DNA of 64,000 nt from Zootoca vivipara. Its lineage: Eukaryota. The notes beneath the pieces were generated by a model, which saw nothing but the letters and a program-made list of their open reading frames with translations, made no database searches and had not been told where the DNA came from. The stretch is from NCBI RefSeq assembly GCF_963506605.1, contig NC_083281.1, positions 26,784,001 to 26,848,000 of the forward strand, given 5' to 3'. Positions 4,682-62,223 of the stretch are shown here, one piece after another. The first letter of the stretch is position 1. Each line of letters begins with the position of its first letter. The translations under genes and the position numbers were made by a program.

Positions 4682-4687
4682 TTTATT
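4682..4687 (-). terminator. Candidate polyadenylation signal of NCAM-like gene
   Basis: AATAAA on minus strand about 1.1 kb past the stop codon. Confidence 0.4.
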
Positions 4688-5811
4688 GAGATTCAGGATC
4701 AGGGATGATGGAGAAGAGGTAACATCAGAGGAATAAAAGTTTACTCTCTAAATGGCCGTACAATTCTACGGAGAAACTCCAGAACTTTTTTGCTTGACAC
4801 AAGGGCTCTGAGACAGCAGAATGAGGTGAGAATGAGGGGAAGGGGGATTTCCAGTCTGCTCCTGGTAGAGAGAAACCATGAAGGTGGGGTTGGGGAGTCT
4901 GTGGCCCTAATTCCTATCAGCCTCAGCTAGTATGGCCAGTGATCAAGGATGATGGGAGCTGTAGTCCAGCAACATTTGGAGGGTCAAAGGTTGACCCTCC
5001 CTACACTGGAGCAGTTTTCCCTCAACTTGATGCCTTACTGATGTCACTAAACTACAGAACCCATCACCGCTGACTAGGGATGGAGAAATATATCAATTTC
5101 AGTTTCTCTCAGTGTCTTGTTTATCTAATTTATCCAAAGTTCATTCCTCCATATTTCCGCATCAATTGGTGGTGATATATATATGACTCACGAAAGATCA
5201 TTAGGATAAATTTCTCCCATATGCATTTTTTGTTTACAATTTGGCCTAACATGAACATTTTTGACAAGCGGCTTTACCTAATATAAGGCATAACTGCATA
5301 TTAATGTATCTACACTAGTACATGCATTTTTGTACCCACTACTCAGCTGAGGCATGGCATTTCCAAAATTTGGAGACAGGCGGATTTCAAAGGATGCCTG
5401 GCTTTCCTTCTGCGTCTTGTTTTGGGAAGTGCAAATTAGGTAAGTTTGCTTTTAAATGAGAACAGAATCAAATTTCTCCCCCCAGCCCTACCCTTGACCA
5501 TTTGGGCCATGGTGGCTTGGAATGATGGGAGTTGGAATCCAACATCTAGAGAGCATAGAGTTGGAGAAGGTTGCATGAGGAGGGCGTTTGGCTCCCATTC
5601 AGCTATTCTGAAAGGGAGAGTTGGGTCACTGGGCCACAGACAGGAGGGTGTTAAGGAAAAAGTGAGATAAGAGAGCCAGACACTGTTTTCTCAGCTCTCC
5701 CATATGGGAAGTCGCCTTTGTGCTTCCATTTTTGATGAAGAGCTCATCCAATCTTGGCCATGGAGTCCCATCTCCATCCCTGCACAATCCAAGGTCATTG
5801 CTGTAGACTAA

Positions 5812-5872
5812 TCAGGCCTCAATGCCAGAAACATTCACCACTGTGCTTTTTCCTGACTTGGAGAGCATTTTC
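5812..5872 (-). CDS. NCAM-like last coding exon (KMLSKSGKSTVVNVSGIEA*)
   Basis: Acceptor TTTGTTTCCACAG; phase 2 joins in frame; TGA at 5814-5812. Confidence 0.7.
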
Positions 5873-8800
5873 CTGTGGAAACAAATAATGGAAAGATAGC
5901 ACATGGGTGAGCAGGGATAAAAATGCTTGTTTATCCAAACCATTTTTTTATCCCAACCTTCAGCTGAAAAAAAGGCTCCCAGAGCAACATACAGAGATCA
6001 AAAATAAGATAAGTCAGGTTAACCTACCCTATTTGAGGAAGCCAGTGTGGCGTAGTGCTTAAGATTGTCAGCCTAGGTCTTGGGAGAGACCAGGGTTCAA
6101 ATCCCCACTTGGCCATGAGGCTCACTGGGTGATCTTGAACCATTCACCATATGTCAGCCTAGCCTACCTCAAAGGGTGATTGTGATGATAAAATGGGGAG
6201 GATAACCATGAGTGCCACCTTGGGCTCCTTGAATGAAATATAAATGTGGTAATTAAATTTCTATCAGTGGGAGAGGCACAGTTGCCATTCAAAATCAGTT
6301 GGCGGGTGGGTGTTTTTTTTTGTTTTGTTTTTTTTAAGTCTGTGACATACCGGTATATGAAAGTATACTTGTGCCAAAGAAGAAAGAAACATGTAATAAA
6401 GAACAGGGATCAATAATATAAATAGGAACAACCGGTTATAAATCTTTTTCAGATATGTCCCAATTAGCCCTGAGTCCTTGGACTAACTGAACTACCGGTA
6501 CTAGATTCCAAGAATTTGTGATATACAACATAAGGTTGTGTTTGTAGAGAACAGGCTCTCGATAAAAGGAAAAGTGCTCAGCTAAAAGACCTATCCATTC
6601 TGAAGGAAATCAGCCCTGAGTGCTCACTGGAAGGACAGATCCTGAAGCTGAGGCTACAATACTTTGGCCACCTCATGAGAAGAGAAGACTCCCTGGAAAA
6701 GACCCTGATGTTGGGAAAGATGGAGGGCACAAGGAGAAGGGGACGACAGAGGATGAGATGGTTGGACAATGTTCTTGAAGCTACGAACATGAGTCTGGCC
6801 AAACTGTGGGAGGCAGTGGAATACAGGAGTGCCTGGCGTGCTCTGGTCCATGGGGTCACGAAGAGTCGGACACAACTAAACAACAACAAAAAAGACTTTT
6901 TATCGGCCACTGACACACTAGTGGAATTATTTGGACACATTCCCCAAAGCAGATGGAGAAGGTTTTCTAAGCCTCAGGACCAATTGGGACATATCTGAAA
7001 AAGTCTTAATGGTCAAAACATGTCTATAACTGATGGACCATGGAAATCACTACGAACTGCTATCACCAACATCCCAATCAGGCTGCTGTGGGTGCCAACT
7101 GAAACATGGGATGGGATCAGTAGGTGAAAGATTAGTGGAGGAAGCTCACCACTGGAGAAGGTTAAGAAGAGCTTCCCACCATTGCTATGCCAATATTTGG
7201 TCCTCATTTCCTACCATGGCTATCCTTCTCTCCCCCATACAAACTCACCCGTTGTTTTCTGTGCCTGCTCCAGAAGAGTTTTTGCCCGGGATATTGTTCC
7301 TACAGTACATCAGCAAGCCACGCTGGCGCTTGTAGTAGCAGAAGACATCCATCACCAGCAAAGCCACCAAGAGGATGATCAGCACAATGAGCACAATGAT
7401 GCCAGTTCCCAAACCTTGAGTGTCTGGAAAGAGGAGAAGGACATTCATTTGCAAGAGCAGATGGGAAGGACACCAGAATGCAGGAATCCTTTCACTAGCC
7501 TTGAGCAGAGGATGACCCCATTGTGTGCAAAGGCACCGGCCAAAGGGGGAAAGCTGAGGTGAAGGTAAGTCAGCACAGACATCCTGGCATGTACTGTGGC
7601 TGTAAGAAAGACAGCCATTGGGAGCAACAGGCAGGATTGTTGGCCGGGAGTGAGACATATTGTGGTTCTCACAAGTTCTCTAGGACCTTTGATAGAGTGC
7701 AACTTCTCAAGCTGCAATTCCTTTGGACCTATATAAGATTTTATGACTGGCCCTTGATCTATTGCTTTGTTACACAAAATAATTGAGTTTATTTTATCAT
7801 TTTTTAGTGAAGGGGACGGGACTGGTAGTACCTGAAAGAGATATGAGAATCTAAGCAATATAGACATTTTTATTACTGCTATAACTGAGCCAGCTTAGGT
7901 TAGTATGCTTCCATTTTATTTTATTTTATGCATGTTTTCATAAATATTTGTATAGTTTCTTCATCCTAACTATTTAATTTCAAATAAGATTTATTCCTAG
8001 GTATTTGAAGTCACCAAGGGCTATGGTTAGGAGCATGTTATGAGAAAAGCCAAATGAGATCCCTTGTGTTCAGGTTGACCAGAAGGATTGTTGATTTTGG
8101 AAAATTTATTCACAAACCTGCCACTTAATGAATTTGCTTACCGCCAGAAAGTTCTTAATTTTTAGTTGAAATCTCATTTCTTGTCATTTGAATCCATTGA
8201 CTCAGGTCCTACCTACCCACCTTCTAGAGCAGAAGAAAATAAGCTTGCTCCATCTTCCATGTGACAACCCTTCAGATATTTGAAGTTGGGTGTCATATCA
8301 CCTCTCAAAATAAAATAAACAAATAAATAATTGTCCAATAGCACCTTAGAGACCAACTAAGTTTGTTCTGGGTATAAGCTTTCATGTGCATGCACACTTC
8401 TTCAGATACAATGAAACAGAAGTCACCAGACCCTTATATATAGTGAGGGGGTGGGGTGGGGTTTTTTTAAGAGGGGTAGTAGGAGATGGGTGATTGACTC
8501 AATGGGCATGGTAAACCTGTTGATGACTGTTAACGACTGCAATTAGTCCTACAGGAAAAAGCAAGGGATAGTATGCAGATGACCAAAAGTAGCTTTAGCA
8601 TATGTAATGAGACAAGAATCCAATATCTCTATTCAGACCAGGTCTCTCCATAGTTTTCAGTTTAGTAATAAATTGTAATCCAGCAACTTCTCTTTCCAGT
8701 CTATTTCTATATATAAGGGTCTAGTGACTTCTGTTACAGTGTATCTGAAGAAGTGTGCATGCATACAAAACCTTATACCCAGAACAAACTTAGTTGGTCT

Positions 8801-11800
8801 CTAAGGTGCTACTGGACATTTTTTTTAATTTTTAAATTTATTTTGACTGTGTCAGACCAACACGGCTACCTACCTGAATCTAATATCACCTCTCAGTCTT
8901 CTCTTCTCTAGGTTAGTGTCAACATTCTGACTTTAAGCCAATTGTTTGCAACTCACCTTCTTGAAGAGTAACCTTCTTTTCGCTGCTACCCTGATCATTG
9001 GCAGCTGTTATTAGCAGTTCTGAGAGATCCTCTTGTGATGTTGGCGTGAACTAGAACCAAAATTTAAAAGGAGAATTTAAGATGCATCAAAATGTGAAGT
9101 GGAATAGTATTCTGCTATGACAAGTGAAGGCACACTTATGGGGTTTTCTTTTTCCAAAACTTGCACCTGCCTTCTCGAGCCTGGTGCCCTCCAGATACTG
9201 CTAGACTACAACTCCCAGCATTCCTGACCATGGGGTTATAGTCTGAAACATCTGGAGGGCACCAGGTTGCAGAGAAGAGTGGCTTACACTGCAGGTGTCC
9301 TCAGCGACCATTGGTGGCTTCATATTCTCTCTTACTAGGGCTCAGCAGAAATAGTGATCCAGTCTAAAATTCATGAACTTAACCCAACAATTCAAGGAGG
9401 GATGGTTTCATGGAGTAGCCCCTTACCCAACTCTTGTGGGGTTGAGTTTACCCTTTCATTGTGAAGTGAACAACTGGTCAGGGCCGGCTCATCATAGACC
9501 CCCGGTGGCGCAGTGCACCATGGCGCTGGGCTGGTAAGCTGGGCGCCGGCCTGGTAAGGCGGGCGCCGCGCGGCAAAGCCGCGCAGAAACCAATTGCACC
9601 CTGTGAGGGTGGGGCGGGCGGCGGAGCGATCTCCGCCCCTCAGCACCAGGGCAAGCGATCTGCTCAAGACGGCCCTGCAACTGGTGTATGTGGTGTGTGT
9701 GTGTGTGTGTGTGTGTGATCTTTCATTAAATGTTCATCAAATGCCCTGCAGCCTCCCTGGCTGCCACCACTTCCTTATCTGCAAATGCCTCAAGGGAAAA
9801 GTTAAGCTGCTAGAACCACCAAGGGCAATTTGTCCATCTGCCTTGCCCCATGCTCCATGTCTGGGTCCTTATAAGGTGACGACGCTGCTTAAGCATTCTT
9901 GTCTTCTCTTTGCCTTTTGGAGGATGTGTTTGGTTTTTAATACTTTTGAAATGCATTGAATTGGTATACTAATCTGTAGTGTTTGTTTTTATTGCATGCC
10001 GACAGCTTCTAGCAGCCACAAGTAAGAGCTCCGAGCAAAGGTGAATAAACTGCCCCAGAAGGAGCACAACGTGCCCCCCACCAGAGGAACTACCCCTCCC
10101 CTAACACCCCATACTATGTTAGGCAAAATTGCACTCCAAAATTCATATATATTCTGACAACTGCTCCCTAAAATGCTGCTGAATTTTCATGAAGACTTAA
10201 AAAAATAAATACAAACTGATAGAGAAAAGTGGAGAATTGAATTTAAGATTGGGGGAGTGGGGATGAGGAACTGAGAGAAACTGAAACTGACCAATTTGTC
10301 ATGGAATGAGTTGGCTGTTGACCAATGCTCAGGGATGATGCAAGTTGTAATCCAAAGCAGTCTTACCTCAAAGGAATACGTATGTCTGTCTTGGTCCTGC
10401 GCCACTTTCTTGATATCATCACCTGTAAAAACTTTTCCCTTCCAAGCAACGGAGACAGAGGGGGGAGGGTAAGCCCAGATGCTAAAGTTGTATTGGACAG
10501 GTGTCCCAATCTGTGTGGCGAATGGGTCACCTGTGAGGAGCTCTATCCTTGGAGCGACTGGGAAAGTAAGCCAGAGTGACAGTTTGTTACATAGGAAGCT
10601 AACTTTTGCCATTATTTTACCTCTGGATAAAACATAGTGACTGCCAAGTAATATATTTTCTGTTATTTCTGATGTACTTTGCTTTTGAAAAATTGTTTGC
10701 TGGTCTTTGGCTCTTAATAAAGAATGTGGGTATTTTCTATACTGACTGGCAGTAGCTCTCCAAGGCTTCAGGCAGGAATCTCTCTCAACCCTACCCCTTC
10801 TCTTTCCAAATCAAAAGACCCATCCACTCCTTGCTTCCTAAACTTTACCTATGGTTAGGTCTATCCACTCAGCATACAACCAAATCTACAACCCTGGCAG
10901 CCCAACATAGACCAAGGCTCCTATCTCCCAGCACTGTGCTGAGAGACCCAAAATATCTCTTACATTTAATATTGAGGGAGACAACCATGACAACAGTTTC
11001 ATTCCGCTCTTTAATACTGGCCTCGCAGGTATGGACACCAGCATCTGAGGGTTGGGAGTCCTTTACCACCAATGTCCCATTTGCAAGCACAGAGACTCGT
11101 CCTCCTGCCCAGAAAGGAGAAGCAAATTAGCAGTGGTGACAGTGGGATATATATACAGGTGAAACTCAGAAAATTAGAATATTGTCGAAAAGTGCATTTA
11201 TTTCAGTAATGCAACTTGTTTTTTTAATTATTTTTTTACAAATGCTTTCTTTTGGAAATTCCGCAGTAATAAAACAAATAGTTACAATAATTCAAAAATA
11301 AACATCACTATTACATTTCATTAATTACATTCCATTTATAATTGATCCACCTAATGACAAATAATTAAAATTACAACAAATAAAGACTTGACATATCTTG
11401 CTTTGCATGTCATGCATCTATCTCATATTTTAGTTTCACCTTTTAAGTTGCATTACTGAAATAAATGCACTTTTCGACAATATTCTAATTTTTCTGAGCT
11501 TCACCTGTATATGGCAGGTACATACTAGCAAAATATCATAACAAATGCCAAAAGCAAAAGGGATATCAGTTTGCATTATCCTGTACCTTATTGCTTCAAA
11601 ATAAATTAGAAAGAGACTTCATTTCTTCATAAAGACATTGTCTATCCTCTCTCTGGTTCTAACCATATGTATGAGCTTAGTTATCCATTCTCTGCCCCAC
11701 CCCCACCCCCAAGTTTTGTCAAATAATAACTTTGGCAGCGGTGAAGAGATGTTGCATTAATCCCTTGTCTTCTAATAGTACAGGAGAAGCAAATTAGCAG

Positions 11801-14800
11801 AGGTGCGAGTGGGTTTTCTATCTAGGGGCACCTTTGAACAGAATATCCTACTCACCATCTCCGATCTTACTGATTTCCTGGTTTCCAAAGGTCCACCGTA
11901 CAGCCGGTGGCGGGATTCCAGTGGCTTGGCAATCAAAGGCTACACTTGTGCCCTCAACAACTTCTTTTGTAGGCTCCATGGGGGTCACAAACCTTGGTCT
12001 CTCTATGGATAGGAACGTGGGAAGTTGATTTGTACCCAGCCAAGCCATGTAGCTGACTGGCAGTACCTCTCCAGGATTTCTGGCCCCAACTGAAGACGCT
12101 AAGGATTGAACCTGGGACCTTCCAGAGGCAAATCACAACTTGGGGGTAAAAAAATCAGGGTCAGGTGGACTGGACCACTTGGTGACATCATGGTATGATG
12201 AGCTATGTACATGCTGTTCAAACCCATGGGCAGAGGGAGCCTAACCTTACCTTTTGCATTGACCTTATTGCCTGCTGTTTTTAAGGATATGATGGGGGGG
12301 ACAGAGAGTGGTTTAACAGTTAATCTGTCTTCACAAGAAAATCTGGGAACTGTGGCTCGGGGGGGGGGGATGGGACCTCCTAACAGTAGTTTCGTAGCAC
12401 TTTAAACATATGGCGTAAACGTGACCTGTGGTGTGTTAATTTCACCTAACACGCCCAATTTATTGACCAGGACCATTTTCAATATGAGGGATGCATTCCC
12501 TAATGGGCAAGTTTCCATGGTCTACATGGCAAGCGAGGCCAGAGGCAAGAATTGGGGCAAATGTAGATGAGCCAGTCAACCAAGAGACATTATCACATTT
12601 CAGTAAGGAGAGAGCCCCTGAGGTTGCGTGGCCTTGGGGGGTCCCAAGGGCCAGATAGAGAGGCCTGATCCATCCCCTCCTCCCTGGATCTGAGGTTCTC
12701 GATCCCTGTTCAGGCATATTGCAGGAACGCTGATAGAATAATGTCACTTACGAACCACACGGATTCTGATCTGGGTAGCTGCCGTGTCTCCAGATTCAAA
12801 GTCCCCTTTGCAGGTGAAGATCCCTCCTGCCTGTGGATCAGGAAGAGTCATCTCCAGCCCCTTAGACTGCTCATCAATAGGCCGCAATGTGTACAGCTCC
12901 GAATCCTCGATGTCGGCATCCTCTGGGTCAGTCCAGGTCAAGGTAGCTTCCCCACCTGCTCTCACTGACATGCAGAGGAATTAAAATGCACAATTAATAG
13001 ATCGCCCAGATGGGGTGGTAGCAAGGGAGGGAGGGATGATGAGAAACCTGGCCTGATTGATAGGGCTATCCATCAAATCAGGGGTTGCTAAGAGGGTTGC
13101 CAAACCTTCAGGGATGACCTGAAATCTTCATGTTTGCCTGCCTCCACTCTGGGGGCAGGAGGAAGGCTTGTATCTCTAGGCACGTACGACTGCCTTAAAA
13201 GGGTTTAGTTTTTTTTTTAAAAAAAAAGCCCTGTTCAGGGAGGCTTTTAATGTTTAATAGATTATTGTGTTTTATTTTTCTGTTGGAAGCCACCCAGAGT
13301 GGCTGGGGAAACCCAGCCAGATGGGNNNNNNNNNNNNNNNNNNNNNNNNNNNNNNNNNNNNNNNNNNNNNNNNNNNNNNNNNNNNNNNNNNNNNNNNNNN
13401 NNNNNNNNNNNNNNNNNNNNNNNNNNNNNNNNNNNNNNNNNNNNNNNNNNNNNNNNNNNNNNNNNNNNNNNNNNNNNNNNNNNNNNATGATTGCCTAGAT
13501 CTCTGCGAGGGGTTCTGCCCTCCTCCACTCCCTCCCCACTTCTGCCAATTAACCTCCATTTCAACAGCTCAGTGATGGGAGGTAGCACAGAGGAAGAAAA
13601 AGGACTGGGCTGGGCTCAGGATAAAGAGAGGGTTATGAGTTTGCATGCACACCTGGAGCAAGGTGTAGAGCTCTGGATGCGGGTGAAGCAGGTGGAAAGC
13701 AGGAGGAGGAATNNNNNNNNNNNNNNNNNNNNNNNNNNNNNNNNNNNNNNNNNNNNNNNNNNNNNNNNNNNNNNNNNNNNNNNNNNNNNNNNNNNNNNNN
13801 NNNNNNNNNNNNNNNNNNNNNNNNNNNNNNNNNNNNNNNNNNNNNCAACAGTTTCTCTGTTTTGCAAACATGTCCACAGGCCCCCCCAAAGTTGGCAGCC
13901 CTTCCAACAAATGAATGGAGAGTTGTATAAGAGAAAAGTTGTGTACACACATACACACTATCTTAAAAAGTTGGATGAATGGGTGGGTTGTTGTTTTAAA
14001 GAAAGTCCAGATTTTCACCAAAACAGGAGCCACTCTGCTCTAGAAAGGGCAGTGACTATGTAGTTGTCAAACATATCCAATCATCTATTGAGGACCGAAG
14101 CTATGTACAATTAAAGTCTGCACAAATCCCACCAAGGATCCTAGGAAGCAACAGGGATTACCCCTTACAGAGCTACAATTCCCAGCTTCCTTAACAGTTC
14201 CCATTATTCTTTGGGGCGGGTGGGGGGGGGGATATGATTTAAATGCATACATGTGTACACAACTTGAGTGCAGGTGGGGAAGGAAGAGGTTCTGTGAATT
14301 TTAAACAAAAGGAAATGTGCAGATAGAACAGCGAGCGGCTGGGAGCCTGTCCCACCTCCAAGCCCTCTTCCTGTCTCCCCAAAGCCACAAACAATTGGAC
14401 TTTAAAAAACAAACAAACCAGATGCTGTATGGTTATTTAAATATATCAGCAGCAAACATGATTTTAACAGACCACACACACACACCCAGAAGCCGGCTGG
14501 GAGAGAGGCCAAACTGGCAATGCAAGCAACGTCCAGTGTGGAGGGAAGCAGGTGTGTCGTCTGAAGGGCCACGTCAGACCATTGCTCTATTTAGCTCAGT
14601 GCTGCCTACACTGACTGGCAGCCGCTCTCCGGGGACTCAGATGTGAGGTGAGCTTTCCCTGCCCTATCTCGAGATGCTGGGGGTTGAAGCTGCTTGCCGA
14701 AGATGTGCTCTGTCGCTGTGCTATGGACCTTTCCAATAGGAAGCTTCCTTATACCAACTCAGATCATTGGTCTGTCTTGCTCATTACTGTCTATCCCAGG

Positions 14801-15373
14801 GACTGGGAGCCTGAGGTCTTGCAGATGTTGTTGGGCTACAATGCCCATCATCTCTTGACTACTGGCCATGCTGGCTGTGGATCATGGGAATTAGAGTCCA
14901 CAAAAGGAGAACTGGTGCAAGTTCATTTGGCAAAGGCATTGAAGAAGCCACCATGGTGAGTCCCACAGGCCTATAGATTACAGGTGTATACAGAGGCATC
15001 CCTTAGCTTTACGCATGCATAGAATTTAAGGGCTCACCCACACTTCTGTTTTTCCTGCGATTCCTTCCATTTGGCCCATGATTCCTAGGCATGGGTCCAA
15101 GAGGTTTCTTTTTATGGGTCCCGCTGCTTTTCCTGGGAAAACCTGCTGTTTACCGCTGAAATGAAACAAATGCTGATCTTCTGCTGCAAACCCATTTGTT
15201 CTCATTGAGCAGTAAGCAGCCGGTTTTGCCCAGGACAAAAGAAAAAGAACCTCTCCTTCCCTTTCCAACTCTACAATTATGTGATAATCACAGGGCAAAC
15301 AGGACTGTGGATGTGCCCTAAGTCCTGTTCACGGAGGGAAAGTCACCCTGCGCCATCAGGGTGGAAGAAGAGG

Positions 15374-15420
<47 letters not shown>

Positions 15421-17559
15421 TTATTTATACCCCGCCCATCTGGCCGGGTTCCCCCAGCCACTCTGGGCGGCTTCCAACCAAACATTAAAATACAGCAATC
15501 AAACATTAATGTTAAATGTTAAAAATGTTAAAAGGATGCTCATTCTTATCAGGCTTTGTCAAGGTTGAGCTTTTCCTGCACATACGTCCTTGACGCACCT
15601 CCTTAATGCAGGCTGGGTAAGCAGATTCCCCTAACAATATCTTTAGAGTTGGAAGGGAACCCGGGGGTCATCTAGTCCAACCCCTTCAATGCAGGAATCT
15701 TTTGTCCAATGTGTTGGGAATTATAGGGCACAGAACTACCTAAGCTGTACAGAAACTTATTCATGTATGCTACCACAGCGGCAAGAATGTTACTTGCCCA
15801 GAAATGGAGAGAAGCAGAAGTCCCAGCAAAGGCAGAATGGATACAAAACCTTATGGAATATTCAGAAATGGCGAAACTTACCGGAAGATAACAAACTTTT
15901 TATATATATAAAAGAATTGAAATGTTCTATTGAATATTTACAGATTAATTGTAAACAGATAAGAACATGGGCAGGGTTATTGTATTAACCTGCAGTTTTA
16001 TATAAGAGTATATATTTAAAGTAGATAAATAAAAGAGCAAACTAATTTAATTTGAAGAAGATATTAAAAATAAATTTAAGGAACCACAGAAAGAGGGGAA
16101 AGGAAGACAAGTTTTAAAATGTTAAAATGATTGTAAAACTAGTGAAAAGTATAAACCTGAAAAGCATAAATAATTTTTTTTAAAAAAAATGGGGGGACTT
16201 GAACCCATGACCCTGAGGTGAAGAGTCTCATGCTCTTCCGGCTAAGCTATCCTAGACAGTCTGGGTAAGGGGAATCAACCAATTCCCCACTGCTGGTCTC
16301 CATTGACTGGCAGCAGCTCTCTCAGGTTTCAGGCAAGGAAGAGATGCTGGGGTTTTGAACCCAGGGCTTTCTGCATGCAAGCAGGTGCTCTGCCACTCAG
16401 ATCACCCTGCAGGGGCCCGAAATACTGTGCTGTCTCCTGCTTTGATGCATATTCGTGCATACACTCTCCATTATCCGCTTTCACCTTTGCACAAGAAATA
16501 CGTTTTCTCGCCCAGCTGCACATCCCCGTTGCCGGGAATGATCTCCAGAGACGTCTTGGCAGAGTGAACAGCCCCTAGGAAGAGGAAAGAAGAACATTGT
16601 TTGGTCCAATCACAAGGCAAAGTCATTTTTAGCTCAGAGCATCTAGTCAGGGCTGGCCGACCAGCACAAGCAAGCGTTCCAAGCAGCCACAGCCAGTGGC
16701 AATAGTGTTTAGGGCACCACTTAAGCAGCAGATTATTCAAGAGGCATCCCCCTCATGATCCTCGGCAACCTCACCATAATGACAGGGTGTAGCTTTATAA
16801 TTGCAACAACAAAACATGCCCTGGACCACTTTAGAGTCCAGTAAAAGTAAAAATGATGGGTCGGTTATCTACATTTCAGTCGCTACACTGGTGAGTCAGC
16901 TAAATGTAAACACGGGGTAAATAATTCAAAAGGGGGAGAAAGTGTGCTTTCTTTGACCCCACTCACACCATACATTTAAAGCATTATGATACAGCGGTAC
17001 ATCGACTTCCGACCTTCGGAAGTCGAAAAATTCGTAAGTCGAAGCCAATAGGGGGATTTTAAAAATTCCTAAGTCGAAAAAATCCTATCTAAACCGCATC
17101 CAAAATGGCAGATGGAACTCTGTTTGTAACTCGAAACATTCGTAGGTCGAGTCATTCGTAAGTCGAGGTACCACTGTATCACTATAAACATTCCCTCAAA
17201 GAATTCTAGGAGCTGTTGTTTGTTAAGGTGCTGAGTTGTTAGGAAAGGCTAATTCCCCCGCTGGAGCTACATTTCCCAGAGTGCTTTATCATTCCCTCTT
17301 CCCATGGACCTCTGGCCTCTGGGAACTGTAGTTCTGGGGTGTCTCTTAACAACCCTCAACCAAGTATGCTTTCCAGGAATCTGGAGCTGGGGAAAAGCAT
17401 GACCATTATAAGGGACATGATACTGTTTTGATTGTATAGTGCAGTTGGAACCTAAGTCATGTCAATTAATTTCACTGGGTCTACCCTGACTAGGACTAGC
17501 ATTGACTAGAACCCAAAATAGGTGTTGACTCATTCAAAACTATCCTGTTAGGCATTTAG

Positions 17560-17599
<40 letters not shown>

Positions 17600-18071
17600 T
17601 TTGCAGTTAGGAAAACGAAGCAAAACATTTGCTTGCAAGTTTGAGCTAGGACAAATGGCTGTTCAGCTGCCATCTCCAGTTAGCAGGATTGGAGAGCAAG
17701 TAACAGGGGAAAACCTTTTTCTGCCTTAGATGCTGGAGAGTACCTTAGCTGCCAGTCAGAGCAGACATTGCTGGGTTAGATGGACAAACTGGCCTGGTAA
17801 TCAAAACAAAATTAAAAAAAATTCTTTCCAGTAGCACCTTAGAGGCCATCTAAGTTTGTCATTGGTATGAGCTTTCATGTGCATGCACACTTCTTCAGAT
17901 ACACTGAAACAGAAGTCACCAGACCCCTATATATAGTGTAATATTCCTAGATTTTCTAGAGTTAGATTACTTGCAGAAGCCTTCAGTCTATCATGAACTC
18001 ATCCTCTGACTGTACTTACATAGCCCAAATGCCCAGGCAGCCAACGCTATCCCCATGCAAGAAGGAAACAT
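5812..18071 (-). CDS. NCAM-like Ig superfamily type I membrane protein (mini-NCAM), 9 coding exons, about 387 aa: join(18071-18020,16574-16485,12964-12752,12002-11856,11104-10964,10557-10367,9050-8957,7423-7249,5872-5812)
   Basis: All introns are GT-AG. Phases 1,1,1,1,1,0,1,2 join into one open frame of 1164 nt. Segments resemble NCAM1: LEIIPGNGDVQLGEKTYFLCKV (Ig1), GRVSVLANGTLVVKDSQPSDAGVHTCEASIKER (Ig2), FAPRI..IWAYP..YSFE/FTPTSQED..TAAN (Ig5), GTGIIVLIVLIILLVALLVMDVFCYY..GLLMYC..N..GK (TM/juxtamembrane). Confidence 0.9.
6590..6890 (+). mobile_element. BovB (RTE) LINE 3' fragment
   Basis: MRREDSLEKTLMLGK..RRRGRQRMRWLD; (CAA)n tail; flanking AAAAGAC repeat. Confidence 0.9.
7249..7423 (-). 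CDS. NCAM-like transmembrane exon
   Basis: DTQGLGTGIIVLIVLIILLVALLVMDVFCYYKRQRGLLMYCRNNIPGKNSSGAGTENNG; 175 nt, phase 1-2. Confidence 0.9.
8308..8882 (-). mobile_element. Penelope-like element with inverted pseudo-LTR, inserted into a CR1 fragment
   Basis: Inverted arms of about 110 bp (8333-8440 and 8708-8818); minus-strand NRLEREVAGLQFITKLKTMERPGLNRD resembles the GIY-YIG C-terminus; 13-bp TSD ATATCACCTCTCA (8295-8307, 8883-8895). Confidence 0.75.
8957..9050 (-). CDS. NCAM-like exon, C-part of Ig5-like domain (not in ORF track)
   Basis: TTCTAG|FTPTSQEDLSELLITAANDQGSSEKKVTLQE|GTGAGT; 94 nt, phase 0-1; resembles NCAM1 VTPDSENDFGNYNCTAVNRIGQES. Confidence 0.85.
9350..9690 (-). mobile_element. 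GC-rich LTR/DIRS-like repeat fragment
   Basis: Abrupt CpG-rich block in an intron with no NCAM coding similarity. Confidence 0.35.
10367..10557 (-). CDS. NCAM-like exon, N-part of Ig5-like domain
   Basis: FAPRIELL...VQYNFSIWAYPPPSVSVAW...TYSFE; 191 nt, phase 1-0. Confidence 0.85.
10964..11104 (-). CDS. NCAM-like exon, C-half of Ig2
   Basis: GRVSVLANGTLVVKDSQPSDAGVHTCEAS; 141 nt; GTAAGA donor. Confidence 0.9.
11156..11507. mobile_element. Tc1/mariner-type MITE
   Basis: TIRs of about 60 bp (CAGGTGAAACTC..GCAACTT), TA TSD; second copy at 31631-32008. Confidence 0.85.
11856..12002 (-). CDS. NCAM-like exon, N-half of Ig2
   Basis: QRPRFV...EVVEGTSVAFDCQATGIPPPAVRW, I-set motif; 147 nt; GTGAGT donor. 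Confidence 0.9.
12752..12964 (-). CDS. NCAM-like exon, C-half of Ig1
   Basis: VRAGGEATLTWTDP...AGGIFTCKGDFESGDTAATQIRIRVV with Ig Trp and Cys; 213 nt; GTAAGT donor. Confidence 0.9.
13326..13845. other. Two assembly gaps (13326-13486, 13713-13845) in the intron between the Ig1 half-exons
   Basis: N runs. Confidence 1.
15374..15421. repeat. (TAA)n microsatellite (L2 tail)
   Basis: Direct reading. Confidence 0.9.
15715..16185 (+). mobile_element. L1/Tx1 LINE 3' fragment
   Basis: LFMYATTAARMLLAQKW..EW motif; A-rich tail. Confidence 0.7.
16485..16574 (-). CDS. NCAM-like exon, end of signal peptide and N-half of Ig1
   Basis: AVHSAKTSLEIIPGNGDVQLGEKTYFLCK; TAG acceptor, GTGAAA donor; 90 nt, phase 1-1. 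Confidence 0.9.
16991..17177. mobile_element. Tigger/pogo-like MITE
   Basis: TIRs CAGCGGTACATCGACTT / AAGTCGAGGTACCACTG with TA flanks. Confidence 0.7.
17561..17596. repeat. (CAG)n microsatellite, intronic
   Basis: About 12 units. Confidence 0.9.
18020..18071 (-). CDS. NCAM-like exon 1b, signal peptide (MFPSCMGIALAAWAFGL)
   Basis: 52 coding nt; donor GTAAGT at 18019; pyrimidine-rich acceptor CAG ending at 18104. Confidence 0.6.
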
Positions 18072-18429
18072 TGTTGGGCTTAAGAGGACCCCCCAAAGTA
18101 CAACTGGGGCAGGGAGGTTGGAGGGGTAGGAAATATACCATAGATTAGAAGGCGAGAGAAGTCTGATTAGGGCCATGCATGGTCGGTAGCCACAAAGCAC
18201 TGAGGAAAATTGGAGGAAAGATAATGGGAGAAGGGGAGAAGGTACGCCAGACTGGCTGGGACCTTGAAGAGGGGCACTCCACACTGCAATATTTTGTTGC
18301 AAGTCTCACTTGCTCCATTAAAAAAAAAAGTCATAAAGAGGAAGGAACAAAATAGCCAAAGAGCTAATACCAAGGGACTGTGGGGGGTGCAGTCTAGACA
18401 CCCACAAACTCCCTTCATGGAACAGGACC

Positions 18430-18516
<87 letters not shown>

Positions 18517-18518
18517 TC
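18430..18518. repeat. (CTTT)n microsatellite just inside intron 1a
   Basis: About 22 perfect units. Confidence 0.95.
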
Positions 18519-18525
18519 ATCTTAC

Positions 18526-18565
18526 CTGCTGCAAACATGAAAATGAGGAATCTCCCTGGTTCCAT
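18526..18565 (-). CDS. Alternative first coding exon 1a of NCAM-like gene (MEPGRFLIFMFAA, phase 1)
   Basis: ATG at 18565; donor CAG|GTAAGA at 18525; 40 nt; about 80 nt downstream of a TATA box; hydrophobic. Confidence 0.6.
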
Positions 18566-21201: not shown

Positions 21202-21235
21202 CCCTAGACCACTATGCCACTGTCCCTCACAGTCA

Positions 21236-21935
21236 GAAATCCTGGAGAGGTACTGCCAGTCAGCTACATGGCTTGGCTCAGTACAAATCAACTTCCCATG
21301 TTCCTATCCATAGAGAGACCGAAGTTTGTGACCCCCCATGGAGCCTACAAAGGAAGTTGTTGAGGGCACAAGTGTAGTTGATTGTCAAGCCACTGGAATG
21401 TCGCCACCGACTATACGGTGGACCTTTGGAAACCAGGAAATCAGTAAGATCAGAGATGGTGAGTAGGATATTCTGTTCAAAGGTGCCCCTAGATAGAAAA
21501 CCCACTCGCACCTCTGCTAATTTGCTTCTCCTGTACTATTAGAGGACAAGGGATTAATACAACATCTCTTGACCGCTGCCAAAATTATTAGACAAAACTT
21601 GGGGGGGGTGGAGAATGGATGACTAAAATCTTGACCGTTGTATGCAGGGTTAAGCTCATACATATGGTTAGAACCAGAGATTGGATAGACAATGTCTTTA
21701 TGGAGAAATGAAGTCTAATTTATTTTGAAGCAATAAGGTACTAATTTATTTTGAAGCAATAAGATAATGCAAACCCATTTGTGTGACTCGGAAATGTGTT
21801 ATATTGATCTGTCATTGGTTATTTGTTATTGGCTGATCTTGATTTATGTGCAGGTATTTGTCTTGCTCAATGTTCAGTTCTCGATACCCCTTTTGCTTTT
21901 GGCATTTGTTATGATATTTTGCTAGTATATACCTG
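21236..21935 (+). pseudogene. Inverted partial duplication of the NCAM-like Ig2a exon with flanking introns (pseudoexon about 21313-21458)
   Basis: Reverse complement of about 11515-12081. The copy has a +1 C in the C-run and a 3-nt deletion; splice sites are retained. Confidence 0.9.
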
Positions 21936-22679
21936 AGCTGGTCACTGACCATAATAAATTATGATGATGATGATGATGATGATGATGATACCTGCAAAAC
22001 ATATATCCCACTGCTGATTTGCTTCTCTTCTCTGGGCTGCAGGATGAGTCTCTGTGCTTGCAATCTACAGTCCTGTTCTCTGCCTCCATCCATCATTATG
22101 ATGGACATTTTGCTTATAATGTTTACAAGAGACAGCTCCTTATCTCCACAAGGATCCACCATCTCAGGAAAGCAGGGGAACTTGGGGACATGAAGGGGAG
22201 GAGAGCAGGAAAGACAGGGTCTGGTGATTGAGTTTCTTTTCAGAAAAGCTATTCGCTTCTTCCCCAGCCGCTGCCCATCCCAGCCCTTGCCACCACTCCT
22301 CTTCCTTCGAGACAGTGCCCCACCTAGTCAGCCTGTGGTGGCAAGTACATGATGGAAGAACTTATGGGAAAGGTCAGCATGGCGTCATGTGGAACAATGC
22401 CATTGTTAAGGGTGGCCCAGGTGGCCAAGCGCTGGGGCGTCGGCCCAGGTCCCCCTGCCTCTCCCCCGCTTTTAAACTTAAAGTTTTAATTTGGTAAAAA
22501 CGAGAAGACTGTACCTATACTTTGAACATGCTGTAAAATGCAATGCTGATGGGACATGCAGGCACCCAGACAGCTGCAATCTTAATTTGCTTAGACACCT
22601 AGCCTAGAAAGCACTAACTAGGCTTTGGGAAGGAGCCCTCATGCCTCTCTCCCAACATTGCTGACCCCCACCCTACCCC

Positions 22680-27394: not shown

Positions 27395-27630
27395 TACTTT
27401 GGCCACCTCATGAGAAGAGAAGACTCCCTGGAAAAGACCCTGATGTTGGGAAAGATTGAGGGCACTAGGAGAAGGGGACAACAGAGGACGAGATGGTTGG
27501 ACAGTGTTCTCGAAGCTACAAACATGAGTTTGACCAAACTGCGGGAGGCAGTGCAAGAAAGGAGTGCCTGGCGTGCTATGGTCCATGGGGTCACGAAGAG
27601 TCGGACACGACTAAACAACTAAACAACAAC
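27395..27630 (+). mobile_element. BovB 3' fragment
   Basis: RTE C-terminal ORF; TSD ATGACCACCAA. Confidence 0.9.
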
Positions 27631-28638: not shown

Positions 28639-31630
28639 CAATACAATAATAGGCTCCATCTATACTGGCATTCCGTCCATTTTTGCAGATGCACCTGTTT
28701 ACATAGGCATTCCCTTGATCTCTCAACCCAAGTCTTCTGTTGCAATGTTGCTTTAATAGAATTAGTTGCTGCATGTTTTAATTGCATGTGCAGGGATTGT
28801 TTTGTGGTGTATTTTAAGTATGGATGATTATGTTTTATTTTTTAAAAAATACTTTTTATTAAATTTTCCAATTAAAACACAATTCAATTATTTCAATTAT
28901 ATCCAATTATACACATACATATCAATTAAGCCAAATATTATGCCAAATCATTAAAAAAAAATAGGCTTCCCATGCTTCAATGTCTGGGAATTCTAGATAA
29001 CTATTCGCACTGCCGGTTTAGCGCAGCACACGGGGTCTCGCCAAGCGGGCGGCTCGTGAACCGGTTAAACGACCCCTGTGGGCCGCTTGTGGCCCATGGG
29101 CCTTAGGTTGCCTACCCCTGTTTTAAACGTTGTGTAATTGGCTTTGGTATTTTATGAACCGCTTAGAAGCCTACTTTGCCACTTAGTAGCAAGCTGTTGT
29201 TGCTAGTTCTTTTTTTTTCCAGGCTTCCCACAAAGTGTGGTTTGATCGCCTGCTGAAGACAGCAATAGCTGTGACCTTTGCATCTTTCTGTTCTCCCTTA
29301 GCCCACTGCTTCCTTCATGCACTGAGGCAAACTAACATTTCATTCGAGCCAAAATTTCCCAGAAGGGACTTTTCTGGGGATTTTCTTTTCCCCCTGCCCA
29401 CCCATAAACTGTTGGAGATTTCCACCTCTCTCCAGAGAATATCATAGGAAGGTAGGAAGCTGCCTTAAACCAAGTCAGGTCATTCAGTTTGACCCCAGTA
29501 GGTTTGCAAACTTTTCTCTCCCCGGAAGAGGGGCAGAAGTTCAACTGCTGCAGCTTGTTCCCTGTCGAATTCCAAGGCATACGTGCCTCCACCACAACCC
29601 TGGCCCCTCTTTGCCAGCTTCCTCGCTCCTAAAACACTCGTGTTTGTGTGAGGGGGTTTGTCAGATCTCTTTCCACAGTTCCGTTTAGTGCTGCAGCTAA
29701 AAATAACAGTCCTGGAAGCCTTCCCATTTCCTGTGAAGCTGCACCCCCCCTTTTCAGCCCCTTCCTCTAAACTGCTTCCCTCTTTGCAATGATAGCTCTG
29801 TTGTGAGCCAGTAAAGTCTTCTGGGAAAGAGAATACAGAGTCAGAGGTGATCATGTAAACTGTTTAGCTTCAGTGTCTCTCTTTGGGGGAGACAAGGTGA
29901 CTGACAGATCAGGAAGTGAGATCTAGCAGTCAGAGGTGAGGTGGGGCTGATCTGCAATGGAATTGCATCTTGGAAAAGGGGGGGGGGAAGTAAAGTGGAT
30001 GAAGCCTAGGAGTCAGGGAGGGTCCTAAGTTTTATTTCAGGCTCCAGCGTCATGCAGAAACATGACAGTTGTCACCTGGCATCTGTCCAAGCCAGACAAT
30101 GTTCCCTGGCTTGCGGCCAGCTTTATGTTCCTCAAAGAAGAAACACAAACACACACACACCAATCTCCAGGATCCAGCTATTAATGCTTGACTTCTGCTT
30201 GTTGGAAGTGCCAACAGCAGAGATCATCCCATCTCTAACTAAAGGGTTAGTGTTAAAGTCAACTAGCCAAGAAGGGTACAGGTGGAAATGTTGCTTAGCA
30301 ACCAGACCGAGTGGCATGATGTTTGCTGAGACAATACACACCCTGATTGGCCATGTAGTTTGGAGGTAGTTTTCCTCTACATGTTTGATTCAATGTCTCC
30401 CTGCTATGCAAAAGGCCTGAAATAAAAAATTAAAAAGCCTCTCTGTTTATTTCTCCTAAAATTATACACTGCTTTTGTTCATTTTCCTCCCTAAAGTGTG
30501 AGCAACATTTATTTTCTCTCTGGACTCAGCATTATTTATGTGACTCTTGCAAGCACTGCTGTGGTCTTCCTTCTGTCCATAAATCCTCAGCAAATGGGGG
30601 TGTTGGGGTGGGCAAGATCCCTCTTCCGGAGCCGATATTTGTCTTTCAAGAATCCCCCGTTGGCCAAATGGGCATCTCATTCAAAAGCACAGAGAGGTTT
30701 CAGTCTATGAAGAGACCAAACATTTCCTACCCTAATGGCTAGCTCACTGTGATGAGACTTCAGTCCTATCACCCTGGGCTATGAATGTACAATCCACCTT
30801 GCAAAGAAATGCTGAGCTAACAGCCTTAAGGATCGAGCATAACTTATTCTAGTGACTATCTTCTTTCTAAAGTAACTCTGCATGCATATGAGAGGGCAGG
30901 AAAGTCTTTAGGGTAAACACTCCCTAGCATAGCATGAGAGTTGAAACAATCCTCTAAACCACAACAGCCAGAAGATAGCATATGTGTACTTCCTTCTTTC
31001 TCATGAACACACTATTATTATTATTTTTAATTCCTTTCTTATGACAGGGGAACTGAAAATGGCAAAACATTTGTGCAAAATGTCCATTTATCAGCCAGAT
31101 TCAAAATCTGGTATGACCCGGGTCTTCTCTGTAAAGCAGAGGTCCAGGGGTTCAAATAACCCTTCATTTCCACATCAGAGGATATTTCAGCTTGTGTGCT
31201 ACACGCACTGCAGCCCAGCCACCTTCCTCTTCGTGTTGTAAGCCCACATCCCATTTTTATTGGTTTGGTCTGTTGCATGAGTTGGTGGCTCAGGGTGGTT
31301 GAATGCAAACGTTGCAAAGTTAATGAAAGAAACAGTTGCGAAAGAATCAGAGAAAAACCCAGACAGGAGTTAATTCTAGAATGGGATAACTTCAAGTACT
31401 ACTTGAAAAATAGTTGTAATATAAGCACAGTAGTTGCCTTTGAATGATTTCTGTAAATGACATACATAAAGGAAAATGACATCAAAATAGAAAAGAGAAT
31501 TTTTACAAATAATAATGACAAATTAAAGTAATATGTTTATCACAAAGGGAAACGTGGAGAGAATGGGAGGACTTATGTTTGGGTAGAAAACGCATAGTTG
31601 AAATTATATGTAATTTTCTTTGTGAACATA

Positions 31631-32008
31631 CAGGTGAAACTCGGAAAATTAGAATATTGTCGAAAAGTGCATTTATTTCAGTAATGCAACTTAAAAGGTG
31701 AAACCAATATATGAGATAGATGCATGACATGCAAAGCAAGATATGTCAAGCCTTTATTTGTTGTAATTGTAATTATTTGTCGTTAGGCGGGTCAATTCTA
31801 AATGGAATGTAATTAATGAAATGTAATACTGATGTTTATTTGTGTTTTGGTTTTTTTTTTTTGCATTATTGTAACTATTTGTTTTATTACTGTGGAATTT
31901 CCAAAAGAAAGCATTTGTAAAAATTAAAAGAAAAATTAAAAATAATAAGTTGCATTACTGAAATAAATGCACTTTTCGACGATATTCTAATTTTCTGAGT
32001 TTCACCTG
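31631..32008. mobile_element. Tc1/mariner-type MITE (same family as 11156-11507, opposite orientation)
   Basis: Same TIRs, TA TSD. Confidence 0.85.
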
Positions 32009-33388
32009 TACCTGTAGATATCCTTATTGGACTGACTGAAATGAAGATAGCTACGTGTTGTGTGTATATGAAAAATGATTAATAAAGCATTTTTAAAAGA
32101 AAGGGGGGGATAAACAGTTGCAACAGATGTGATTGGCCACTGTGGGAAACAACACTTTTGACTGGCTCAGCACCCATCGCACCATAAAGGCATGTGAGGA
32201 GAGAGGAGGCTGGAGCTCGGTGGTAGAGCTAGGGATGTGAGAAAAATGCATTCGGGTGAACCTACCGAATTCGCACTTCCTGAACCAAACCACAAGTGAA
32301 ACATGGTTCTCCTTGGAAAGTCCATCTGAATTTAGTGACCTACTTCTCCAACCAAAGAATGTGCACAAAAATGCATAGCTTCATTTTTAAAAGTACACAT
32401 TCTTAAAAAAAAGAAAAAAGAAAAGTGTATGCCGCTTAAAATTAGATACAATAAGGCATTCTATTAGGGAGGAATTGCTTGCAAAAATTGCATATATACT
32501 AGGCAAAATTAGGCAGAACGATGTGCATATTAGGAGTGTCAAGTTTGCCCTGCCTAAGATCCCAATTTCATCCCAAGATTTATCCTGTCCTCCCTCCTTT
32601 TTTGTCATCTTTTCTTGGCTCATTACTGGAGTCAACGACCCTTTTTCTTCCCTTTCTCTCTTCCCAGTTCCTCGGCCCTTGATAAAGTAAGGCAACCTCC
32701 TTCCCTTGTTCCCTGCCTCCCCTGCTTATTCCCTCCTACTTTAATAAAGTCTTTTCTTGCTTTCCTCCTTCTCCTTGTGCCTGTGCCTGCCATTCTCCCC
32801 CTCCAATCAATCCTGAAGATCAGCCATTCTGGCTGCAGCTGATGGGACAAAGCAGGCTTAGGGAACTGGGTTAGGGAAGACTGCAGTCAGAGTAGACAAT
32901 GCTAAGCTTGCTGGATCAATGGTTTCATTCTGTATAGGGCAGCTTCTTACTCCTCTTTAAAACCAGGAGACTGGGGCAATGTATATCCAGTCCATGAAGC
33001 AGTCTGGAGAATAGAGCTATCTTGGAAAGACCTAAATCAGCTAACCCTGCTGGAGAAGATTCTTGCCTGAATGTGTCTGATTGAAAATGATTCAGACATT
33101 GAATGGTGACAACACCATGCAAGGGCAAAAATTAAGATAAGGTTGCCAACTGCTCTGGAGAGAACAAAAGAGGCTTTGACATAGAAACCAGCAGGCTAAA
33201 TAAGATAATATACTTAGTATTATTAATTAGGAATGTGGTGAACCCATAAAGACATGATGAATAAGTTGTATTGGAAGAAATATGAGGATTAACTCTATTT
33301 GATTAATTGGGAAGATAGTGAAATAGAAATCTATGCAGGCACTGAACATGCACAGTCGATGGGAAAAGAGAGCAGATGGGAAAGTATT

Positions 33389-61878: not shown

Positions 61879-62223
61879 ATGAGCAACTACGAGAAGCTGA
61901 AAGAGGACCCCATCACTCAGGATCCACCTCCTTACTCTGACAAAGACTCACAACCAACTAAAGACCCTAAGCCAACTAAATCTCTTTCTGGATCAGAACC
62001 CCATTGCATGGGCTGGCCCTCTAACCCTGTGCCATCCCAGTACCAACATTATGTTGCAGCTGGTACAGGATCCCACCAAGTTTCGATCCTTCAACCTCCG
62101 CAGGCCACCATCATCATTCGTGGTCCACCTGCCAATGAGCCTGATTACTTGGCCTACTCTATCTGTACCATGCTTTGCTGCTGCCTCCCCCTAGGCATTG
62201 CTGCCTTGGTTTACTCTATCAAG
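61879..62223 (+). CDS. CD225/dispanin paralogue C, exon 1 (115 aa; exon 2 beyond window)
   Basis: EPDYLAYSICTMLCCCLPLGIAALVYSIK|GTAAGT, same phase-0 donor as A and B. Confidence 0.9.

Follow-up and report, generated by a model that had tools for sequence, protein, structure and literature searches.

A three-Ig gene of the lizard Zootoca vivipara is probably the squamate member of a third vertebrate NCAM lineage

Introduction

How should one classify a gene whose product carries Ig domains and a membrane-spanning segment of the neural cell adhesion molecule (NCAM) type but has no Ig3, Ig4 or FN3 domain? This question is raised by a locus of the lizard Zootoca vivipara, which lies on the minus strand of a stretch of 64,000 nucleotides (RefSeq assembly GCF_963506605.1, contig NC_083281.1, positions 26,784,001 to 26,848,000; henceforth the window, in whose numbering all coordinates are given). 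An earlier note, made from the letters of this stretch, had described it as an additional NCAM paralogue with an Ig1-Ig2-Ig5-transmembrane (TM) layout. Here, we present evidence that it is, with high confidence, an intact and transcribed gene whose product is a type I membrane protein of 383 aa and belongs to the NCAM family. Four of five features of that family are present in it, the one absent being the ectodomain of five Ig and two FN3 domains. We further argue that it probably represents the squamates in an old third NCAM lineage of vertebrates, which would predate the coelacanth-tetrapod split and is neither NCAM1 nor NCAM2. A 2021 review treats the NCAM family as comprising NCAM1 and its paralogue NCAM2 (PMC8471948).

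Gene structure and transcripts

The splice sites, read directly, define nine exons on the minus strand running from 18565 to 5812, with every intron bounded by GT and AG and most sites near consensus (GTAAGT or GTGAGT donors; a pyrimidine tract followed by CAG or TAG at the acceptors). The joined exons amount to 1152 nt, that is 383 codons and a TGA stop with 0 internal stops; the uninterrupted frame of the earlier note is thereby borne out, while its length of ~387 aa is corrected to 383 aa. The introns are in phase 1 at all domain borders, in phase 0 within the third Ig domain and in phase 2 ahead of the last exon. Each Ig domain is split over two exons with phase-1 borders between the domains, and the previously noted phase-0 split inside the Ig5-like domain can be read directly in the lizard gene. 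The exons of NCAM1 have the same layout of two per Ig domain with phase-1 borders. The parts of the gene are as follows:

18526..18565, minus strand: exon 1, coding part; start codon followed by all but the end of the signal peptide (13 codons plus 1 nt)
16485..16574, minus strand: exon 2; remaining signal-peptide residues and the first half of Ig1 (C42), with a match to the Ig1 profile
12752..12964, minus strand: exon 3; second half of Ig1 (C95), in contig pieces 12752-12966 of three species
11856..12002, minus strand: exon 4; first half of Ig2 (C139), Pfam I-set at 2e-08 for the exon alone
10964..11104, minus strand: exon 5; second half of Ig2 (C190), with the joint 11103/11856
10558..10963, minus strand: intron 5; 406 bp, gap-free, the site of the Ig3 and Ig4 exons in long family members
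10367..10557, minus strand: exon 6; Ig5-like domain, first half (F236 in the position of the B-strand cysteine), donor in phase 0
8957..9050, minus strand: exon 7; Ig5-like domain, second half (I288 in the position of the F-strand cysteine)
7424..8956, minus strand: intron 7; 1533 bp, gap-free, the site of the FN3 exons in long family members
7249..7423, minus strand: exon 8; TM helix and NCAM-type juxtamembrane segment, donor in phase 2
5812..5872, minus strand: exon 9, coding part; short tail ...VVNVSGIEA and the TGA stop
4682..5811, minus strand: 3' untranslated region (UTR); at least 858 nt within the spliced contig, AATAAA at 4687-4682
13326-13486 and 13713-13845, no strand: two assembly N gaps inside intron 2, between the halves of Ig1

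Exon 1 ends on the phase-1 donor G/GTAAGA and the N-terminus that it encodes agrees with those of the orthologues (MGPGRFLIF...). An in-exon ATG at 16626 was considered as an alternative start and rejected, as the orthologues support the start in exon 1 at 18565. A few bases past the exon-1 donor, an (AAAG/AAGG)-type microsatellite occupies ~18430-18520 of intron 1; read in frame it yields (KERK)n, and the stop-to-stop open reading frame (ORF) seems on this account longer than the true exon 1. At the other end of the gene, a motif scan places the AATAAA 1124 nt past the stop codon.

Four sequencing runs were aligned to the window between 7200 and 13100. Coverage outside the exons is zero save over repeats and the introns are exactly removed, so that the runs X1, X6 and X7 fit RNA. 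X1, which holds contigs of Zootoca vivipara, contains one spliced contig of 2056 nt (depth 22.7), whose pieces are consecutive (12966-12752, 12002-11856, 11103-10964, 10557-10367, 9050-8957 and 7423-7248) and whose length equals 86 + 90 + 213 + 147 + 141 + 191 + 94 + 175 + 919, which accounts for all nine exons together with UTRs of 46 nt (5') and 858 nt (3'); the ~46 nt of 5'UTR upstream of the start codon in exon 1 are derived from this length. X6 and X7, which come from two related species, reproduce the joints of X1, and together the contigs cover all predicted junctions from exon 3 to exon 9. Both junctions that the earlier note had singled out are present in contigs of the three species: 10964/10557, which skips the 406 nt of intron 5, occurs in X1 and X7 with an equivalent joint in X6, and 8957/7423, which skips 1533 nt, is likewise used. 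Further joints are 12002/12752-12754 and 9050/10367, and the last junction is confirmed by a loose end of X7 at 7248, which corresponds, when reverse-complemented, to the beginning of exon 9. The spliced contigs of the three lizard species contain no extra exons between Ig2, the third Ig domain and the TM segment. Most of intron 7 consists of a very high-copy repeat (8185-8972), over which the summed contig depth in X7 reaches tens of thousands, with many loose ends.

The two N gaps are the only N runs within the window. The exon 2/3 junction joins phase 1 to phase 1 and yields ...FLCK-V-RAGG... (K-V-R-x-G-G), which is conserved in all squamate orthologues. The orthologues in four other lacertid assemblies are collinear, 383 aa long and free of any insertion at this junction. 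Because of this conservation and collinearity and the exact length of the spliced contig, we conclude that the gaps in intron 2 hide no coding exon and leave the reading frame untouched, in keeping with the earlier note's view that they do not hide the missing domains.

Domain composition of the lizard protein

The predicted protein consists of a signal peptide, Ig1, Ig2, an Ig5-type domain, a TM and juxtamembrane segment of the NCAM type and a tail of 47 aa with VVNVSGIEA at its end. The identity of the Ig domains was established with per-domain profiles cut at the exon-defined borders of the family alignment and scored against long relatives. The profile of domain 1 selects Ig1 (63.5 bits in the coelacanth protein, 38-40 bits in ncam1b, and also the best match in shark NCAM2), and that of domain 2 selects Ig2 (64.8 bits in the coelacanth and 46-56 bits in ncam1b, with Ig4 second at ~35 bits). 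The third domain of squamates and caecilians matches Ig5 of the coelacanth protein (400-483) with 50.8 bits versus 9.9 for Ig3, and Ig5 elsewhere with 26-29 versus 10-11 bits in ncam1b, 32 in shark NCAM2 and 23 in amphioxus, whereas the third domain of frogs and the salamander selects Ig3 (83 bits in the coelacanth, 66-68 bits in ncam1b). By these scores, the third domain of the lizard protein belongs to the Ig5 type and not to the Ig3 type, which upholds the Ig1-Ig2-Ig5-TM layout proposed from the sequence at the outset. All long relatives share with the lizard gene the L-x-[VIF]-T-P motif where exons 6 and 7 meet.

This Ig5-type domain is unusual in having neither of its cysteines. Both are missing in the window protein, all squamates, the caecilians and the coelacanth (...VNVTILF... 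and ...SYELIAKN...), whereas ncam1b, shark NCAM2 and amphioxus retain them in the contexts N-[IL]-[ST]-C and Y-N-C-T-A. Since the coelacanth protein already has neither, the loss is a trait of the lineage older than tetrapods rather than decay in the lizard. The six cysteines of the lizard protein are one pair in Ig1 (42, 95), one pair in Ig2 (139, 190) and two residues in the juxtamembrane segment (334, 346). The ectodomain bears three N-glycosylation sequons (N172, N198 and N234); among the polysialylation sites of NCAM, the F-strand sequon is lost and N234-F-S lies two residues off the B-strand site.

No relic of the missing domains was recovered. Searches by tblastn with coelacanth, FN3-bearing caecilian, salamander, frog, bichir, sucker, lungfish, ncam1b and NCAM2 proteins matched nothing in the locus but the nine exons and showed no trace of Ig3, Ig4 or FN3 in introns 5 and 7 or in the 64-kb window. 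This agrees with the earlier description of an intron of 406 bp and one of ~1.5 kb, both gap-free and the latter without an FN3 exon. The FN1 domain, which serves as a docking site, is likewise absent from gene and transcripts.

The 57-aa TM exon provides the most specific link to the NCAM family. It encodes NCAM-type residues (D331, C334, Y335, G341, M344 and C346), the aspartate of the helix being conserved, and a phmmer search with it against 1.84 billion representative proteins returned 10 matches. All seven long ones bear NCAM-type names: a 375-aa Hemicordylus protein ('NCAM1-like'), short proteins of a caecilian and a frog, a 722-aa coelacanth protein and NCAM-like proteins of a chiton and amphioxus are among them; the remaining three are short unnamed fragments that share a VVDVTCYY-type motif. 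The TM signature perceived by the earlier note is hence that of the NCAM family. Both juxtamembrane cysteines are conserved, and the C-terminus VVN[VI]SGIEA is found in all tetrapod members.

In structural terms, an AlphaFold2 run on the Podarcis orthologue (93.5% identical to the window protein) with a 26-sequence family alignment gave a mean predicted local distance difference test (pLDDT) score of 83.4. The model comprises three beta sandwiches, a helix at 312-336 and a disordered tail; means over 10-residue blocks across the sandwiches range from 81 to 96, those of the third domain from 88 to 96. Foldseek against the PDB places Ig1-3 of NCAM2 (2wim) first and Ig1-3 of NCAM1 third, amid many generic multi-Ig proteins, and the lizard Ig1-Ig2 match 2wim and 1qz1 collinearly in sequence. 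In phmmer searches of the PDB with single exons, exon 3 had no match, exon 6 gave noise only and exon 4 retrieved generic I-set proteins.

Such generic matches raise the question of whether the protein instead belongs to another family of three Ig domains, such as the IgLONs (NEGR1, OPCML, LSAMP, NTM and IgLON5), and shares with NCAM only a general I-set likeness. The IgLONs, too, have three cell-surface I-set Ig domains and a similar overall shape; IgLON structures appear among the Foldseek matches, and the PDB sequence matches are mainly to titin, ROBO, DCC and contactins. However, the IgLONs are anchored by glycosylphosphatidylinositol (GPI), whereas the lizard protein has a TM helix instead of a GPI signal, an NCAM-specific TM exon and an NCAM tail. 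Domain by domain, its profiles pick out Ig1, Ig2 and Ig5 of NCAM in this sequence, full-length members of its clade possess five Ig domains along with two FN3 domains, and no specific sequence relation to the IgLONs was found, which makes such an affiliation barely credible.

Phylogenetic position

Phylogenetic trees were inferred with IQ-TREE from 27 proteins over 481 columns and, separately, from the Ig1-Ig2 columns alone. The sample comprised the window model, 8 squamates, 5 amphibians, lungfish, coelacanth, bichir and a cypriniform, together with 4 ncam1b proteins, an Arapaima NCAM1-like protein, shark NCAM2, amphioxus and two molluscs; we left out redundant squamate sequences, incomplete models and hits from outside the NCAM family. 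The vertebrate NCAM proteins form a clade (100/99) that includes the lizard gene, with amphioxus and the molluscs outside. Within it, the ncam1b-type proteins and shark NCAM2 make up one clade (91/88), and the coelacanth, bichir, sucker and lungfish proteins fall with all tetrapod short forms into a second clade, here the third NCAM clade (100/99 on 481 columns). On the Ig1-Ig2 columns alone, the third clade is recovered at 97/93 and the tetrapod clade at 99/99. The paralogue envisaged in the earlier note is thus placed in a clade (100/99) apart from ncam1b and NCAM2.

Pairwise scores concur. The shark protein (P0077) is a true NCAM2, with 421 bits on Ig1-3 of human NCAM2 versus 280 on NCAM1, and the coelacanth protein is neither NCAM1 nor NCAM2 (178 and 159 bits, respectively). 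The latter (P0066, 777 aa, named 'neural cell adhesion molecule 1 isoform X2') retains five Ig and two FN3 domains. Because the third clade includes a cypriniform gene, we place zebrafish ncam3 there too as its probable orthologue. The ray-finned members of the clade, P0123 (Polypterus) and P0134 and P0238 (Xyrauchen), give no Ig5 profile match and have four I-set stretches and FN3; loss of domains seems therefore not to be confined to tetrapods.

Within the tetrapods, the two trees differ. With all columns, caecilians join squamates (100/99), with frogs and the salamander left outside; with Ig1-Ig2 alone, the tetrapod lineages form an unresolved fork in which amphibian monophyly is not rejected (approximately unbiased test, p-AU 0.27). 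The first topology would favor two old tetrapod paralogues, one with Ig1-Ig2-Ig5(-FN3) in caecilians and squamates and another with Ig1-Ig2-Ig3 in frogs and salamanders, in place of a single gene that was independently pruned, and the shared Ig2-to-Ig5 junction and cysteine-less Ig5 of caecilians and squamates speak in the same sense. However, the grouping of caecilians with squamates may stem from the non-homologous third domains, since the Ig1-Ig2 columns by themselves leave the fork open, and none of the species in our searches has both types. We therefore regard the two-paralogue scenario as possible but rather unlikely. The data allow a single tetrapod gene with independent domain losses, in which squamates would have lost Ig3-Ig4 and the FN3 domains, caecilians Ig3-Ig4 and one FN3, and frogs and salamanders Ig4-Ig5 and the FN3 domains.

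Orthologues and their database names

The joined model is identical over 383/383 residues to XP_034974494.2, named 'neural cell adhesion molecule 1 [Zootoca vivipara]' in RefSeq. The model is thus already known under a misnomer; the novelty lies in interpreting it as belonging to a third NCAM lineage whose domains were pruned differently across tetrapods. A word-index search with the Hemicordylus protein recovered orthologues of 365-388 aa in ~20 squamates (iguanians, geckos, a skink, lacertids, Varanus, Rhineura and many snakes) and relatives in caecilians, a salamander and frogs. The same type of search found no orthologue in birds, turtles, crocodilians and mammals, which is to be read as 'not found' and not as 'lost'. 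When the coelacanth protein or an alignment of four proteins served as query, the word-index search yielded ncam1b, hemicentins, titins and L1-type CAMs, and neither tetrapod NCAM1/NCAM2 nor ncam3. The names given to these proteins in the databases are inconsistent: NCAM1(-like), NCAM1-B-like, NCAM2-like, neogenin-like, IGSF10-like and hemicentin-2-like. Our literature search found no paper on a third NCAM lineage or paralogue or on short NCAM forms of reptiles or amphibians; zebrafish ncam3 figures in papers as an expression marker only, for the gill lamellar endothelium and the dorsal neural keel.

The RefSeq name is the one argument for taking the protein as a short splice form of a true NCAM1, with the Ig3, Ig4 and FN3 exons elsewhere in the locus. 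Against it stand intron 5, which measures just 406 bp, the failure of tblastn to detect an Ig3, Ig4 or FN3 relic in the 64-kb window, and the position of the protein in the tree outside the NCAM1-type clade. Furthermore, it is ~25% identical to ncam1b, whereas true orthologues score far higher (421 bits for shark NCAM2). A splice form of NCAM1 is hence highly improbable, and the RefSeq name is misleading for the lizard gene.

Comparison with the known members brings out what the lizard protein shares with them and what sets it apart. With NCAM1 (CD56) it has in common Ig1, Ig2, an Ig5-type domain with L-x-[VIF]-T-P and the TM and juxtamembrane motif (D in the helix, C-Y, G-L-x-M and G-K), and a segment of its tail resembles the EPIVEV region of NCAM. 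It differs from NCAM1 in having no Ig3, Ig4 or FN3, an Ig5 without disulfide and, in place of the long tails of NCAM140/180, a tail of 47 aa ending in SGIEA, as well as in its separate clade and its low identity to ncam1b, the teleost stand-in for tetrapod NCAM1. NCAM2 (OCAM) provides the best structural match through its Ig1-3 (2wim), collinear over Ig1-Ig2. Nevertheless, the lizard protein reaches just 79 bits on human NCAM2 Ig1-3 against the 421 of shark NCAM2, and it departs from NCAM2 in the same domains and the same disulfide as from NCAM1. A full-length counterpart is coelacanth P0066, which belongs to the same clade and shares the I-D-E motif of Ig1, the lack of both Ig5 cysteines and a similar TM motif, but has the Ig3, Ig4 and FN3 domains that the lizard protein lacks and a different C-terminus. 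The amphibian short forms join the lizard protein in the tetrapod clade (99-100) and have the same Ig1-Ig2, TM segment and C-terminal VVN[VI]SGIEA. Of these, the caecilian proteins XP_033770262/3 keep one FN3 after Ig5, and the proteins of Xenopus (XP_041427690), Pleurodeles (XP_069057259) and Discoglossus (KAM4651041) have as their third domain an Ig3 with its cysteines.

Selection and the status of the gene

Of the exon sites at which two related species differ from the window, 26 were listed, a subset of about 34-41 differences per species; 17 of them are synonymous and 9 non-synonymous. Given 225 synonymous and 732 non-synonymous sites, this amounts to a pN/pS of 0.16 (binomial p 6.6e-6 against neutrality). 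In a cruder count, in which per-exon totals were compared with the amino-acid differences to Podarcis, the majority of replacements lie in exon 6, which encodes the first half of domain 3, with hardly any in exon 5; domain 3 may thus be under a different selective pressure. The counts point to purifying selection (pN/pS ~0.16-0.35), which, given the fast change of the protein over long times, is relaxed relative to NCAM1.

Several features of the gene might nonetheless be expected of a partial NCAM duplicate in decay, with the open frame merely left over: domains are missing, the Ig5 cysteines are absent, the sequence changes fast, and a frameshifted inverted copy of exon 4 lies nearby. Yet ~20 squamates as well as amphibians retain an intact frame, spliced transcripts exist in three species, and synonymous changes are in excess; the loss of the cysteines is already found in the coelacanth, and the Ig folds are confidently predicted. 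A pseudogene is consequently a very improbable explanation.

Other observations must be set on the opposite side of the balance from our interpretation of an intact, expressed member of a third NCAM lineage. At strict thresholds, Pfam recognises Ig2 only, and exon by exon, I-set or Ig_3 is reached by the Ig2 exons alone. X1, X6 and X7 are only guessed to be RNA, with their tissue of origin coded, and a raw RNA sequencing run of Zootoca vivipara (X15), of which ~6% was read, contained no exon reads; expression is therefore low or not ubiquitous. The gene evolves fast for an NCAM, with 55-64% identity between squamate families and 22-26/383 changes among lacertids, and the cruder count gives a pN/pS of ~0.3 on the assumption that organism C, a related species, is close to Podarcis. 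Finally, the tree was built without tetrapod NCAM1/NCAM2 and zebrafish ncam3, their stand-ins being teleost ncam1b and one shark NCAM2.

Genomic surroundings

Part of the region around exons 4 and 5 (11081-12082) recurs as an inverted copy at 21234-22063 on the plus strand, ~2.7 kb upstream of exon 1, with 87% identity; its version of exon 4 has a 1-bp insertion and a 3-bp deletion and is thus a frameshifted pseudo-exon. This copy is without the repeat found at 11151-11512 and hence predates the insertion of the latter. That repeat, in intron 4, is an element of ~360 bp with 67-bp terminal inverted repeats that resembles a miniature inverted-repeat transposable element; a second one at 31628-32010 is 88% identical, and the element is highly covered in all RNA-type runs. 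Pieces of a BovB/RTE-type long interspersed nuclear element (LINE) occur at 33400-34638 (minus strand), 6675-6998 (plus strand) and 27410-27622 (plus strand), with one open reverse-transcriptase fragment of 412 aa, and the C-terminal LINE motif ...MRREDSLEKTLMLGK.EGTRRRG... is present three times. The nearest coding neighbours, ~24 kb upstream of the NCAM-like gene, are the first exons of three tandem genes of the CD225/dispanin type on the plus strand (42146-42985, 55935-56264 and 61879-62277), which encode a proline-rich N-terminus followed by ...EPD[HY]L.YSI.TMLCCCLPLG.AAL.YSI... and might serve as synteny markers. A GC-rich tandem repeat with a period of ~150 nt fills 63190-63990 and generates long overlapping ORFs on both strands.

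Functional and evolutionary implications

In NCAM1 and NCAM2, homophilic contacts are made by Ig1-Ig2, and Ig3 is required for zipper arrays. The FN1 domain of NCAM docks the polysialyltransferases that modify Ig5, FN2 bears the FGFR-binding loop, and the juxtamembrane cysteines are palmitoylated. By analogy with these roles, we posit that the squamate protein would act as a short receptor for adhesion or recognition in the plasma membrane, binding through Ig1-Ig2 to itself or to NCAM1/NCAM2 at a reach of about three domains above the membrane, with the cysteine-less Ig5 as a putative stalk. Having no FN3 domain, it would offer neither docking for polysialylation nor FGFR-type signaling, and would thus be a short, non-polysialylated molecule. 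Raft targeting and partner binding might proceed through the conserved juxtamembrane cysteines and the C-terminal motif, and coupling to the cell interior would probably depend solely on the juxtamembrane segment and that motif.

As to its origin, the squamate form probably arose when the block of Ig3-Ig4 exons and the FN3 exons, each bounded by phase-1 introns, were lost; the exon phases fit the shortening by phase-1 blocks that had been suggested for this locus. A more far-reaching version of this history, which we consider distinctly unlikely, would see in these genes an overlooked third vertebrate NCAM ohnologue that was repeatedly pruned. The series would then run from the coelacanth with five Ig and two FN3 domains over the bichir and sucker, apparently without Ig5, to Ig1-2-5-FN3 in caecilians, Ig1-2-3 in frogs and salamanders and Ig1-2-5 in squamates, the last acting without polysialic acid as a cis partner or competitor of NCAM1/NCAM2 dimers.

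The more general proposal, that the lizard gene belongs to a third NCAM lineage, would mean that such a lineage has persisted since before the coelacanth-tetrapod split, as opposed to the two-member view of the family (PMC8471948). It also implies that the inconsistent database names mislead work that depends on orthology. In terms of evolutionary mechanism, modular exons bounded by phase-1 introns would have let different lineages drop different blocks of domains while keeping Ig1-Ig2, the TM motif and the C-terminus. The surviving forms would thereby constitute a natural deletion series for asking which NCAM domains serve what: Ig1-Ig2 without Ig3 would test the zipper model of adhesion, and Ig5 without FN1 the rules of polysialylation.

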